Origin: Auanema rhodensis
Taxonomy: Eukaryota > Animalia > Nematoda
Assembly: GCA_964057225.1 (NCBI GenBank)
Contig: OZ059899.1
Location: 13,268,001 to 13,332,000 of the forward strand
Length of the DNA: 64,000 bases
Reading direction: 5' to 3'
The translations under genes and the position numbers were made by a program. This document shows positions 23,751 through 64,000 of the stretch, piece by piece; the first letter of the stretch is position 1; the number at the start of each line of letters is the position of its first letter. Under the pieces are notes generated by a model that was given only the letters and a program-made list of their open reading frames with translations, had not been told where the DNA came from and did no database searches.

Positions 23751-23886
23751 ATGGGCAACGCGCCCACTACTCCTCTGAATTCTAGTTCTTCTCGTCATCG
23801 CGGTAGTACCGTGATTGGTAATGGTGGGTTGCACGAGTCTTCTTCGTCTCGGCAGATTAGACAGCAAGCAGCAAAAGATCTGCACG
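23751..23886 (+). CDS. kin-1: PKA catalytic subunit, alternative first exon (myristoylated MGNA-type)
   Basis: MGNAPTTPLNSSSSRHRGSTVIGNGGLHESSSSRQIRQQAAKDLH plus a phase-1 donor G|GTTCGT. It has the MGxxxT myristoylation consensus and the MGNA start shared with PKA C-alpha1 and a C. elegans KIN-1 isoform. Acceptor TTTTCTAAG lies 26 nt upstream. Confidence 0.75.
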
Positions 23887-26800
23887 GTTCGTTGCTTTCA
23901 TCAAATTTCTCATAGTCGATCACAAAATAGTTTAAAGTTTGGTGTGTGCGTGCCCGATTAACCGCACTACACGCTTGCGTAGTTAGATTTGCATGGTATA
24001 ACCACAGTATTTCACATTTTTCAATATCAATCTGAAACATTTGCACCCAGGTTGTACGACATTGTAGCTTATATATACTGATTATGGTATTCTAGATATT
24101 GTCTGAAAAGAAATCAACATATAAAAATAAAAATCTATACAATGATATTACATTAGATGTTCAGGACTATATGACGTGCACAGCTCATCTTTTGTGAATA
24201 TCCGATGCTATCAGATGTTCAAGTGCTAGAAAATCTCATTTGATTGTTCAACATGTTCTTTTCAAGTTGACAACGAGATATGTTATATTTAAAGTTTGAA
24301 AATCATACTCATATTGTGGAAAACAGGGTAAAAGTAAAAGAAAATGGAAAATAAACAAATAATAACAGCATTTGGTATAGAGTGTACGAGAGTAATTGTC
24401 TTTGAGTGAGATAGAGATTCTAAAAAAAAAAGAAATGATTGAGTCTCAAGATCAGGTTTGAGCTGTAGTGACAACAGCGGCGGTGGCAGCAGCAGAAGCC
24501 GCAACAGCTTGAGCAAGTTGCGTTCTTCATGCCCCCTTCCTGAAGCGATGCCTCACCAGTAGCCACAGCAGCTGTAAAAAGCTGGTGCTGAGTAGCCAGT
24601 TTTTCGGATATTTTTGTTGAGGTTTTTCCTAGATCATCGCTAGATAGTAAGCCAAGATCAGAGAGTGTGAGAAAGCAGGGTGTGATGAGATAGTAAACGG
24701 AAAAAAACCAATGAAATGGAGAAGATGACTTCATTTGATCAATTTTTTGCTTATCTATGTGCCTTTCTCATGTAGTGTAGAAGCAACAACAGCTGTTTTG
24801 TTGTCACAAAACCATAAGGTTACTGGCTATTCGCTTGCGAATGTCTCTGAGGGAGACAGCTATACCTTCTTGTCGTTTACCTCTCTCTCTCTCTCTTTCT
24901 CTATCTCTCCGTTCGTCTCTTAGATTCAGAGAATCCCTATCTGTTTTTCTGTTCGTTCTCTCCATCTCTATCTTGTAATCCGTCTTACTCTCTATGTAAC
25001 ACTCTGTGAGTTCCAGTATCGGTTTGCTCCTTCTTTTAACTTATTTTCTTGTTCATGAGTAAATGAAGTAAGCACAGTGTTGTATTCGTAAATCATCAAA
25101 CTTTTTCATAATCCTCCACCCCCCGCTCGTCTGCTCTCATGCTGAAACGGGGATTCTCGTATGCTGAAACCGGGAGGGGATTTACTTTGAAATAGAACGA
25201 CGTTCCAGTTGAATTATGACAACTATAATACGTAAATTATTGGGCAAGACGACACAAAAAACTATTGAAAACAGAAAGTATGAGAAGGGATAAATTGATG
25301 TAAAAATAGCTTCATAGTCATCAATTCAAAGAATCTTCTATTATATATGTAATAATTAATATATTTTGTTTACAAATGCAGCAGAAAAATAATCAAATTA
25401 ACTGTTGAAACTATGCTCTAGAATGCTTGTTTTGAAATAGCTTATTTCAAGTTTTCAACTCGAACAACTTACTATATATGTATATGGAAATATGTAGATA
25501 AGACTTTATCATTCTATCATTGTTACCTGTTTTCACACTTGTTAAATCAACTAACTTAACTGCTTTAAACTGATAAATGACTAGCACTTTGGTAATTGCA
25601 ATCTCTTCTGAGCTCTATCAGCTCATCAGCATTACATGTGTACACTTGTTCTGAACTCTCTACTTGCAGCGTGTGGTCATTTCTTCTCAATATCAGTGGA
25701 TATGATCTTTATCACTTGCCATAATTTCTTTATTTCAATAACTGAAATCCCAAAAAAAAAGAAAAGAAAGAAAAATAATGTCGAAGAAAATAAGATACAA
25801 ACTGATAGCAGTACGAGCGGTTGCGTATACTCATTCAGAAGACGACAACACTAACTTCCGTTGTTCCCTCTGGAGACGTCAACGTCGAAAGCTGATTGGC
25901 TGAATTCCGGAACGAAAACGATTTTTTTGTCAAAAAATATCTGAATAAAAGACAAAAAAAGATTTATTTATTTATATCTTTATGAATGAAACGGATAAAG
26001 ACGATTGTTGAAGAATAGTCAGCCTGACATGCTGAATCTTCTATGTGTATGTTTGCTGTACTAAACATCCAATTCGCTCATTTCAAGTTGTTCCTCCAAA
26101 AGTTTTTTTATGGAAGGATTTCTTCTCATATATTTATTGATTTTCTCTGTCTATCTAGAATAATCTTGATTGAAATGCTTTTCTATTCGCTATTCAAAAG
26201 AAGAAGAAGAAGATGAAAAAAAATCTCTGCAAACCTCAGACTACTACGTCATTAATTATTCGATGCATTTATGAAATATTCTGATTTGCCTACTTCAACT
26301 TGAATCCAAATTACATCTCAAAACTTCGTTTCAGATCTCTTTTTACTATTTTCTATTTCAAATTTTTTTCTTTTATGAACTCTGTCAATCTTTTTCTCAT
26401 TGTGACACTCAACCATCCAGCTTTACCTCATTCAGTACAGCACACATCTCAGCTGATGTTCAATGTCAAAATTTGGTGGAATATGTGAGAAAGGGGAAGG
26501 GGGCGGGGGGAAGGGATGATGGTTACACTTCTAATTTCCTTAACCTGTTATTGGTCAATGACTATGCTCTAATATGTTTTTTCCAACAAAAAAAAATAAA
26601 AAAGTTTGCAGTTTTCATATACATTTTTGATTATCTTGTTATTCAGATTACATAAATTATCATATGTTAATGTACAAAATAGTTGTTTTCCTAACTTTTT
26701 GTTCAAACAGTATCATCATATTCATATCATCAGCAAAAACAAAGAAATTCTCTTTCAAACTTCATGTTCCTGATAGCATGATGTTTTTAGTTTCTGCTAG

Positions 26801-27467
26801 TCGCATCAGTCATATCACTGCGAACTCAAGCTTGTAAGCTGAGCCATTGTTCGAAATTCTTTCGGCCATCTGTACCTTATCACATATATATGTACATGAA
26901 CACGGCTTTTACTGTGCAAGTCATAGTTCTCACATACTTAATCGTATAGTAAGCTTTAATCATTTTCAAATCATTTTGTATTTTGTTGTCATTTTCTTCA
27001 CCTTCACCTTCACTTACATGCTGTTGTTAAAACAGATATAGCTAGGTGTGTATATGTGTTGATGACATACTATATGCTCAAATATGCTATTTATATAATA
27101 TTATATATGATATATACATATATATATATAATAAAATTCTATAAATAGGTTCATGAAAACTATAAAAGGAGCCTAATAATCTATGAATATCTATATATAA
27201 TATCTGTATATCTGATCCATTTAATCTTTTTGATATAAGCTTTCTCTTGCTCTTTTCTTCATTTACACTCGCTTTCTCCTTTTTGCTCTCTTTCCCTTTA
27301 TAGTATTTCTATGTTTCTTATTCGTTTCTCTTTATCAATAAATACTTTTCATTTTTGGTTTTATATCCTCGACCACTCATTACCCCTTCTTACTTCGATT
27401 TCCATTTCCTCTACTTCTCTCTCTCTCTCTCTTCCTTTCTCTTTCTTTCTTTTGTTCATTCCTAAAA

Positions 27468-61667: not shown

Positions 61668-61803
61668 ATGTTATCATCATCATTTCTATTCGGTAAAAAT
61701 GCACGTGAACGACGTGAAAAAGAAGAAAAACGATACTGTACACATAAAGATTCTGTACGATCACAACGATCAGAATATTTATCAGCTGGATATTGGCTTT
61801 ATG
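61668..61803 (+). CDS. kin-1: PKA catalytic subunit, alternative first exon (MLSSSF-type)
   Basis: MLSSSFLFGKNARERREKEEKRYCTHKDSVRSQRSEYLSAGYWLY plus a phase-1 donor G|GTAATG. Matches the recalled C. elegans KIN-1 N-terminus MLSSSFFRG...SKYISGGYL. Confidence 0.82.
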
Positions 61804-64000
61804 GTAATGTTATTTCTTTCTTTATTTCTTTTTTTCTATATTATATATAGTTAAGAACACATATATCATATCCTAACTATGCATATATCTTATGATTATT
61901 CTGATTTTTTCTTTTCTTTTGTCCAGCTTTTCAACATTTCCTTTTTAAATGAACATCTATTACACTCCGGTTAGCTGTATCATCGTCGTGTCGACGTCAA
62001 AAACGTATTGCTTACATACAGCTTCAGACACTCATCCGCATTTTTCCATCTACATTATCGTAGTTGATGAAGTCATGTGCAATGGCTTATGAGCACAAAC
62101 ATTTCTCTTATAAGCTTGTAAACTAGGTCATTTTCCACTTCTTTATCTGTTCCATCGAGCTCATTTCTATGTCTGGATGCTCACTCATCCTCATGCTTCT
62201 CTATGCATTCTGAACATTGTAAACGCATCTTTTTCTTCAAAGCTCATATTATTTTTCGATGAACTCATTGAGCTCATGATTTTGAGAATTCACTCATCTT
62301 CTGACTCTTGAGAAGCGTCTTTTCTACAACTTTTTGAACGTATATAGATAATACAAGATGACTATATACATAGATGGGTGGCTCAACTAACTATCCCACG
62401 GCGTTTACCGCCAGTCATTTATAGAATACTTCCGAAATAACTTGACAGATCATCAAGCATTAATTACGAAAACAAGTTCTAAATGGAAAACGTTTTCTTC
62501 ACTTTGGTATTATACAAGAGGAAAAAAAGTTTTTTTTCTTCTTTTATGATTCATATACAGCGGAAATTCTTCATTTTCGTTGTCACGTTCTAGCTTTTTC
62601 CAAGATGCTTTACAGCATTATCGTACTAGTCGTAGTTGGAAGCGTACATCTGTATACTACTATTCTACCTCCTTTATCCTGAATCTCAAACAACCAACCC
62701 AACAAAGCTTATTGTGCTCCTCACCCACTGATCATCATTCTCATTGTCGTGCAGGAGATTTCCAAACGACTTTGAGAGTAAATCGGATTGAGGTCCACGA
62801 ATGATTTGTCTTTGAGCCAGGAGTGCTGCAGGCAAAGAAAACCATTGACGAACACGACGGCTCAGGGGTTATTCCAACAAGGTTCTCGCCGACAATGATA
62901 TGAACAGTGAGAACCCCCTACCACATTTGCTATCACTATTCTGACTTGCCAACGATGACGCGTAGACGACAGCGTTTATCACATCTACACAATGAGGCAA
63001 CGACAACCGATACACATACACACACACATACACATGGACGTGCACATACACAAAGCCATATACACATTGAAAGCTAAGTGTGCGGCTTTCAGCTGTACCC
63101 CGTTCCTTCGGGGATTGCTCTTCGAACTGCTGTTTTTGTCCAGCCGGTGTAGACAAGCATATTTCTGAGCCTCGAGTTCTTGTGGTTTAAATACAAATGG
63201 CTTACTTCGAATTAGGCGAATCCGAGTCTACCTCTTCAATGTCGATGGCAAATTCAACTACATTTTATTTGAGACAATGCACACAAAAAATAAGAAAATA
63301 TTTATCCTTTTTGCTATTTATTTCAGCTAATTTATATAATTTTTCGACTTGTAACTTTTTTTTCTAAGCTAATGAACTCATAGTGCAAGAAAACTTGGCT
63401 TGTCCCGCCTGAGTAACCGAGCAGAACATGTCAGGGTATGAAGGCTTAGCATCAACCTTGTGTCTATTTCGAAGTTAAAAAAACATAAAAACTGAACGCT
63501 AAAGCTGAGCATCGAAATGATATTTCAATGCTGGCTTAAGAATTTTTTGTCTACCTATTGACATTGTTTTTATGGTCATTCCTCAACATTATTCAAAGTT
63601 TGAGTGATGTAGATCCTCCTCCTCTCTCTCTCACCCTCTCTCTCTCTTTCTCTACAATCAAAAAAGTGAGAAGGAGAAGAGAAGAAGATATGGATAAATC
63701 CAGATGAATCAAATTCACTTGGTTCTTCTCTAGTTTAGCATCGTATCTCATTCTTTCCTGGTCTCTTCGTCATGTTCTGTTTCCTACTGCTTCTCATCCT
63801 AAGCCCATCCTTTTTATCGTGTTGTATTCCTATCCAAAATGGCTCGATTCCGGATTTTACTCGATGTTTGTGCGTCCATCTATCTCCTGCCTGATGCCCA
63901 TACTTTGTTTTGTCAGCATTTTTTCAATTCAGGATGAAAAAAAAGCTGATGTTAGGCTCTAACAAATTCTCTAACTCATAAGAGGTTGTATAAGCTATAA

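Follow-up and report, generated by a model that had tools for sequence, protein, structure and literature searches.

A 40-kb "gene desert" in Auanema rhodensis most likely forms the beginning of a nematode kin-1 gene, with one strongly supported and three probable start exons

Nematodes carry one gene that encodes the PKA catalytic subunit (PKA-C), and where the kinase is localised and which substrates it targets are believed to depend on the diversity of its N-terminal isoforms. In C. elegans this gene, kin-1 (ZK909.2), is described, in two papers that summarise Tabish et al. 1999 and Bowen et al. 2006 (PMC9692727, PMC3771449), as having six alternative 5' exons, N'1-N'6, and no fewer than 12 isoforms; the literature also reports that N'1 is myristoylated and that multiple 5' exons are conserved in C. 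briggsae. Vertebrate PRKACA and PRKACB have alternative 5' exons as well (1-1, 1-2/1-L, 1-S, 1-3 and 1-4), with a codon immediately ahead of KEFL divided between exon 1 and exon 2, and the homology of individual exons is not traceable across phyla (PMC5526564). In Brugia malayi, Bm1_45820, the orthologue of ZK909.2h, is a PKA-C isoform predicted to be N-myristoylated (PMC4154664).

The window analysed here is a stretch of 64,000 nucleotides in which a sequence-only reading had seen five short exons on the plus strand, each opening with an ATG and closing with a phase-1 GT donor (E1-E5 below), and had taken them to be alternative first exons of the PKA catalytic subunit. We found all five at the positions given for them, and all five donors are phase 1, so that a codon is split at each junction. 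The region from 23.7 to 64 kb on the plus strand probably represents, judging from its sequence, the 5' part of an orthologue of kin-1 with several alternative first exons; the 40-kb "gene desert" would most likely be where this gene begins, with one strongly supported and three probable start exons. The part of the alternative-first-exon proposal that stood up comprises E4 (by homology) and E1, E2 and E5 (by codon periodicity), giving several ATG exons that share phase-1 donors and one strand, whereas E3 proved to be at chance level.

In the layout that we propose, a kin-1 orthologue would be transcribed from the plus strand through 23.7-64 kb, with several first exons that contain an ATG and exclude one another, all of them ending after base 1 of a codon and presumably spliced to one common exon beyond position 64000. 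The common exon would start with the last two bases of the split codon followed by KEFLDKAREDF (the PKA A-helix), and the kinase core would likewise lie beyond 64000; a motif search of the window, which ends at that position, found no KEFL..EDF common exon and no kinase motif. One kinase core would thus be furnished with varied N-terminal tails: a myristoylatable MGNA... tail from E1, the classical MLKFLK... tail from E4, and probably lineage-specific tails from E2 and E5, with E1, E2 and E5 presumably each serving as a first exon under a promoter of its own. C. elegans kin-1 resembles the proposed locus: there too one PKA-C gene has ATG first exons that are mutually exclusive and feed one kinase core, and one of its tails is a myristoylated MG... 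N-terminus. C. elegans and vertebrates already provide known examples of this layout, and the biology itself is not new; the precedents that the sequence-only reading had called upon are present in the literature (PMC9692727, PMC3771449, PMC5526564). What first exons from a second lineage can show is which tails are conserved (MLKFLK... and, probably, the tail with the myristoylation site) and which are replaced fast.

The evidence from homology comes from E4 (58145..58214, plus strand), which encodes MLKFLKKNTDEGSSSKESKSGAS + C (MLKFLKK...GAS) and ends at a phase-1 donor, gtc/GTGAGT, at 58215 (slashes mark splice sites). We compared it with the PKA-C locus of Dictyocaulus viviparus (L001; GCA_000816705.1, KN716153.1:898380-920699), which was reached via a fragment protein; the bait leading to that protein was partly assumed sequence, but the match itself is a real database protein. 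By tblastn E4 matched L001 7405-7467 with 85.7% identity (E 3e-7), and in the reverse search E4 was the reciprocal best match (E 6.8e-7; next best 1.5). A shuffle test against the same exon gave a z of 12.5 (0/300 shuffles), and the differences between the two exons are mostly at third codon positions or synonymous. Since E4 is the reciprocal best match of a D. viviparus PKA-C exon, the window very probably contains the 5' part of an orthologue of kin-1, and we are highly confident that E4 would be a real, conserved first coding exon of it. Like E4, the classical C. elegans KIN-1 isoform starts MLKFLK..., 23 residues before L-KEFLDKAREDF; E4 is presumably nearer to the D. viviparus exon than to that of C. 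elegans.

In D. viviparus 4.6 kb separate the counterpart of E4 from the KEFLDKAREDF exon downstream of it, compared with an intron of at least 5.8 kb here, and the two loci are alike in having an MLKFLK first exon with the same phase-1 GTGAGT donor. The sequence-only reading had called for a phase-1 acceptor ahead of KEFL, and the D. viviparus common exon begins just as predicted (ttttag/TT AAA GAA TTT...CAA/GTGAGT, encoding KEFLDKAREDFKQRWENPAQ); the C that ends E4, joined to the TT that opens this exon, would give Leu. All 56 of the 56 PDB matches to the common exon were PKA C-alpha or a fusion carrying it (residues 16-35), and the exons downstream of it are those of the PKA kinase core (E 5e-21). 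The phase-1 sites in L001 are donors at 7478 and 10170 and an acceptor at 12118/12119. The D. viviparus annotation has a second phase-1 first exon (L001 10001-10169), downstream of the MLKFLK exon and ahead of the common exon, and thus alternative phase-1 first exons do occur at this locus in a relative. The MLKFLK exon (L001 7405-7477) is itself in no called gene of that annotation, which splits the PKA-C gene into three fragment genes; short first exons tens of kb from a kinase core are easily missed in annotation, and the D. viviparus record is a case to compare.

A homologous first exon could also be a stranded relic, the kinase part having been moved away by rearrangement so that the exons in the window lie outside any working PKA gene. 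Such a history would agree with the lack of kinase exons within the window and with the flanking genes (a DCC-type Ig/fn3 gene and an LDLa-domain exon), which are unlike the neighbours of C. elegans kin-1. However, E4 has an intact ATG, an open frame and its phase-1 GTGAGT donor, and because it differs from the D. viviparus exon almost only synonymously its peptide appears to be under continuing selection, making a relic extremely improbable.

For the other members of the proposed kin-1 array we asked how often ATG exons with phase-1 donors arise by chance. Under identical rules, the 23-64 kb region has 26-49 such candidates on the minus strand vs 14-27 on the plus strand; taken alone, the pattern is therefore at chance level, being no rarer on the minus strand than on the plus strand. 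Donors were scored with a hand-entered weight matrix. Codon-usage training on unc-40 was dropped, its exons being too small for a clean set, and we instead compared codon-position periodicity with that of stop-free null segments for ATG/phase-1 candidates of at least 20 aa (n = 14 on the plus strand, with n = 19 minus-strand controls). Only E1, E2 and E5 had p ≤0.025, against 0/19 of the controls. The test is insensitive, since E4, the one exon backed by homology, was missed (p 0.46).

These results bear on a rival reading of the region, in which only E4 (perhaps also E1) is real, E2, E3 and E5 are chance ORFs, and the 40 kb is mostly ordinary upstream DNA of a regulatory kind, or else a single long first intron full of simple sequence, with no array. 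The chance frequency of the ATG/phase-1 pattern would fit this reading, as would the lack of homology for E2, E3 and E5 and the 25 kb between E3 and E4, where no candidate exon has support. It is harder to reconcile with a periodicity signal that is confined to E1, E2 and E5 and absent from the minus-strand controls, and kin-1 first exons are poorly conserved among nematodes in any case, as seen in the B. malayi N-terminus and the D. viviparus proximal exon. We regard it as unlikely, and an array of alternative kin-1 first exons as the better description.

The candidate for the most 5' member of that array is E1 (23751..23817, plus strand), encoding MGNAPTTPLNSSSSRHRGSTVI + G (split codon), with G/GTAATG at 23818. 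Its donor is ambiguous, there being phase-1 GTs at 23803, 23818, 23824 and 23887 in one ORF, and its periodicity p was 0.013-0.023. E1 is located in an island (23501-23950) whose CpG o/e of 1.37 is the highest, and no upstream ATG was seen within 150 nt of E1, nor within the same distance of E2 or E3. The predicted N-terminus reads M-G-N-A-P-T, an N-myristoylation-type start, and MGNAPT fits the M-G-x-x-x-S/T motif (PROSITE PS00008). The MGNA of E1 equals the MGNA of vertebrate C-alpha1, and vertebrate PRKACA/B further resemble the window in combining a myristoylatable MGNA... exon with long and very short first exons nearer exon 2; in contrast, vertebrates have two paralogous genes vs one here, and apart from MGNA the variable exons are without similarity. 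The start of B. malayi Bm1_45820 is MG... and S/P/R/T-rich like that of E1, but its N-terminus (GGRCSRRAPSPTHPKLS) could not be aligned with E1 past the initial glycine. We found no homologue of E1 in L001, which covers just 7.4 kb upstream of the MLKFLK exon. Taken together, E1 has a good chance of being a real exon.

E2 (27468..27558, plus strand) is a candidate alternative first coding exon of 30 aa, MLHLNHINIVGKMITALPTMIEAPGLYGLA + A, with the donor caa/GTTAGT at 27559. Its periodicity p was 0.021, its start context is ctaaaaATG, and its GC3 is 0.77 within a region of 34% GC; L001 had no homologue of it. We lean toward E2 being real. In the converse comparison, the D. viviparus proximal exon aligned near E2 with window positions 27635-27667 (E 0.62), and this was rejected as being in the wrong frame, ended by a stop and lacking a donor; the DNA alignment was not above the null. 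The marginal Smith-Waterman scores that E1 and E2 reached in L001 were also rejected: the alignments fell on the wrong strand, ran across stops or lay within introns of the kinase.

E5 (61668..61803, plus strand) is a candidate proximal alternative first coding exon of 45 aa (MLSSSFLFGKNARERREKEEKRYCTHKDSVRSQRSEYLSAGYWLY) + G, with the donor atg/GTAATG at 61804. It had a periodicity p of 0.016, and its third positions are 60% A with a GC3 of 0.09, which is in line with, and more extreme than, the real unc-40 exons of the window (GC3 0.20-0.33). In D. viviparus the complete interval that separates the MLKFLK exon from the common exon contained no homologue of E5, a point for the chance-ORF reading, and the proximal first exon of D. 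viviparus (MQEPTSES..., 56 aa) is unrelated to it. Protein and metagenome searches with E5 found no true match (length window 0.55-1.75x, 50% clustering); a match to a representative protein at 24% identity was to a tandem-repeat junk protein and was rejected as noise. A protein search with E4, whose length window of 0.55-1.75x query excludes full-length PKA-C, and a metagenome scan with it had no match either, and because of the length filters and 50% clustering the blanks for both exons are weak. Database homology searches covered window positions ≤58413 and ≥58467, and composition and ORF statistics the whole window. An exact look-up of the ORF at 59586-59912 gave no record. On balance we judge the case for E5 as a real exon to be slightly favourable.

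E3 (32966..32978, plus strand) was proposed as a first exon of four codons, MDKQ + G, with the donor aag/GTAATC at 32979. With 13 coding bases it is too short for homology or periodicity tests, and a search of L001 with this four-codon query found no homologue. Candidates of its class (ATG + phase-1, at least 4 aa) are equally common on the minus strand, and we consider it doubtful that E3 is real.

The 25 kb between E3 and E4 (32979..58144, plus strand) we presume to be intron or regulatory DNA. Pyrimidines make up 61.5% of the plus strand of this stretch, and imperfect (CT)n tracts recur in it at intervals of 1-4 kb; the D. viviparus locus is without strong pyrimidine skew. Throughout the desert we found no nested gene and no transposon, only simple-sequence repeats; its 20 largest ORFs contained no Pfam domains, and no Rfam families were found in it. 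We infer that the exon array may account for the 40 kb of non-coding DNA. A more far-reaching proposal is that E2 and E5 are lineage-specific tails serving as new PKA targeting or regulatory modules, and that the 25-kb interval from E3 to E4 forms a dedicated regulatory landscape which governs the choice of promoter, e.g., via a GA/CT-binding factor; this is a long shot.

Transcription units independent of kin-1, such as lncRNAs or small species-specific genes, might instead explain transcribed sequence and some of the ORFs. In their favour, four small "RNA?" runs contain 15-18% of the sampled words in 58000-64000, or ~1 kb, which is far above the ~0.2 kb of E4 and E5, and there are ORF-free GC-rich islands at 51351-52100, 60651-61600 and 62701-63250. 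The extra RNA could, however, be kin-1 5' UTRs or unspliced pre-mRNA, and the absence of Pfam domains from the 20 largest ORFs and of Rfam families also argues against such units, which we consider very unlikely compared with the 5' part of kin-1.

Counts of piRNA-type and SL-acceptor motifs were unremarkable, and none of the five ATGs has a clear TTTCAG acceptor upstream. Just upstream of E5, the ORF-free GC-rich islands at 60651-61100 and 61301-61600 (plus strand) could possibly be a promoter or 5' UTR, and a short upstream ORF lies ahead of E5 at 61598.

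When we read the sequence of the window, we found all five of the short ATG-initiated exons with phase-1 GT donors that the sequence-only reading had claimed (E1 to E5, plus strand), each exactly where it had been placed. E1 starts at 23751 (peptide MGNAPTTPLNSSSSRHRGSTVI; last base G, donor GTAATG, GT at 23818, with in-frame alternative phase-1 GTs at 23803, 23824, and 23887), E2 at 27468 (30 residues; last base A, donor GTTAGT, GT at 27559), E3 at 32966 (MDKQ, 13 coding bases; last base G, donor GTAATC, GT at 32979), E4 at 58145 (peptide MLKFLKKNTDEGSSSKESKSGAS; last base C, donor GTGAGT, GT at 58215), and E5 at 61668 (45 residues; last base G, donor GTAATG, GT at 61804). 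There was no KEFL..EDF exon or kinase motif within the 64-kb window, so the common exon, which would encode the A-helix of the PKA catalytic subunit (PKA-C), must lie past 64000 if it exists. With TT supplied by that exon, the predicted junction residue is Leu for E4, Val for E1, E3, and E5, and Ile for E2. An enumeration on both strands of all ATG-started open frames reaching a modestly scoring phase-1 GT donor, using a rough weight matrix for nematode donors, gave 14–27 donors on the plus strand of 23–64 kb versus 26–49 on the minus strand. The pattern of an ATG and a phase-1 donor alone is no more than chance, so independent evidence was required exon by exon.

For database searches we used window letters up to 58413 or from 58467 onward. 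Protein, representative-library, and metagenome searches with the E4 and E5 open frames gave no useful match, which is weak evidence since the word-indexed search was limited to similarly sized proteins, and all PKA-C are merged at 50% identity in the representative library. A bait joining the E4 peptide to the common-exon start of C. elegans KIN-1 matched one database protein, the 86-residue "hypothetical protein DICVIV_00476" of Dictyocaulus viviparus, which contains KEFLDKAREDFKQRWENPAQ. At its genomic locus (L001, KN716153.1:898380-920699) the common exon (12119–12180) reads ttttag/TT AAA GAA TTT ... CAA/GTGAGT, and from the ttttag/TT boundary it opens with the two final bases of a codon that the splice junction divides. 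All 56 of 56 PDB matches to its peptide were to PKA C-alpha (or fusion constructs with it), residues 16–35, and the exons 3' of it code for the kinase core of PKA (E 5e-21 against PKA C-alpha). E4 matched L001 7405–7467 (MLKFLKNKTSDEGSSSKESKS) with 85.7% identity (E 3e-7), above 300 of 300 shuffles (z 12.5), and in the reverse search of the L001 exon against the window E4 was the best match (E 6.8e-7), with the runner-up at E 1.5. Differences between E4 and the D. viviparus DNA fall mainly at third codon positions, a bias that marks selection at the peptide level. The D. viviparus MLKFLK exon (L001:7405-7477) ends GGA A/GTGAGT, a phase-1 donor, 4.6 kb 5' of the common exon, and the annotation has a second phase-1 first exon (10001–10169, 56 residues) 1.9 kb upstream of it; thus the phase-1 design and more than one first exon both hold at the locus in this relative. 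On this comparison, E4 is very probably a genuine first coding exon of kin-1, the PKA-C gene. The MLKFLK exon (KN716153.1, about 905784–905856) is in no called gene, and the annotation breaks the D. viviparus PKA-C gene into three fragment genes (86, 68, and 322 residues).

We found no homologues of E1–E3 in L001, which is little informative since L001 covers only 7.4 kb upstream of the MLKFLK exon and E1–E3 sit 25–34 kb upstream of E4 in the window. E5 had no homologue in the interval from the MLKFLK exon to the common exon, which L001 covers in full. The proximal D. viviparus exon (10001–10169) had no homologue in the window, and a weak match from it adjoining E2 was rejected after examination. 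When codon-position periodicity was scored for all candidates of at least 20 residues on both strands, against a null of stop-free segments of equal length, only E1 (p 0.013–0.023), E2 (0.021), and E5 (0.016) reached p ≤ 0.025; the remaining plus-strand candidates had p ≥ 0.10, and 19 of 19 minus-strand controls had p ≥ 0.108. The test appears specific, and it is insensitive, since E4, proven by comparison, scored p 0.46. E5 has A/T-ending codons (GC3 0.09), in agreement with the real unc-40 exons of the window (GC3 0.20–0.33), and E2 is GC3-rich (0.77) with the start context AAAA-ATG. E1 begins MG-N-A-P-T, the form expected for a myristoylated isoform, is preceded by no other ATG within 150 nt, and lies inside the island of top CpG observed/expected (23501–23950). 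We regard E1 as likely to be a real exon and E2 as somewhat likely, lean slightly toward E5 being one, and think E3 unlikely. The proposal of a kin-1 alternative-first-exon array is partly supported: the comparative test with D. viviparus backs gene identity and E4; from periodicity, E1, E2, and E5 are probable first exons of the array.

The design of the locus is the same as that of known kin-1 and PRKACA/B. In C. elegans, the 13 exons of kin-1 include six alternative 5' exons (N'1–N'6), and there are at least 12 isoforms, the N'1 forms being myristoylated (PMC9692727); for a B. malayi orthologue of ZK909.2h, which has an unrelated tail sequence, myristoylation is predicted (PMC4154664); and vertebrate PRKACA/B have a myristoylated exon 1-1 alongside alternative 5' exons that are long or very short, and the boundary of exons 1 and 2 splits a codon (PMC5526564). 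The window locus differs from these in species and in the variable-exon sequences other than E4; as a further case of an already known design, its value is modest and chiefly for annotation.

The exon array may account for the size of the ~40-kb desert (23751–64000), of which the E3–E4 interval (25 kb) has no supported exon. There were no Pfam domains in the 20 largest ORFs of the desert and no Rfam families in it, and its repeats were only (CT)n, (GA)n, and (TA)n tracts. The E3–E4 stretch is 61.5% pyrimidine on the plus strand (60% without long (CT)n tracts), a skew that the D. viviparus locus lacks. Over 27500–58100 the plus strand shows strong asymmetry (GC skew -0.2 to -0.4, AT skew -0.15 to -0.3), with imperfect (CT)n tracts every 1–4 kb and (GA)n tracts far rarer. 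Amid this pyrimidine-rich stretch, a 750-nt GC-rich (0.47), purine-balanced island (51351–52100), with no ORF above 70 residues and no Pfam or Rfam match, could be an enhancer, promoter, or non-coding exon. The 238-residue frame at 56512–57225 (plus strand), the longest in the window without a stop, had no Pfam match and was dismissed as an artefact created where (CT)45 follows a purine-rich (GA/RERE-type) tract. In a sequencing-run search, four small "RNA?" runs contained 15–18% of the sampled words of 58000–64000, about 1 kb and several-fold beyond E4 plus E5; GC-rich, ORF-free islands at 60651–61600 and 62701–63250 are candidate sources of the extra transcribed sequence. Upstream of the exon region lies a DCC/UNC-40-type gene with Ig/fn3 exons. 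An exon for an LDLa domain (16976–17084, plus strand; LDL-receptor class A, PF00057, E 7e-7) belongs to a plus-strand gene that sits between the DCC/UNC-40-type gene and E1. On the minus strand at 9498–10140, two ORF pieces broken up by short introns, for which Pfam gave no match at E ≤ 0.01 (unspliced pieces), resemble by eye adenine phosphoribosyltransferase (..AGLEARG..FLFGPQIA.., ..VDDLLATGGTL..).
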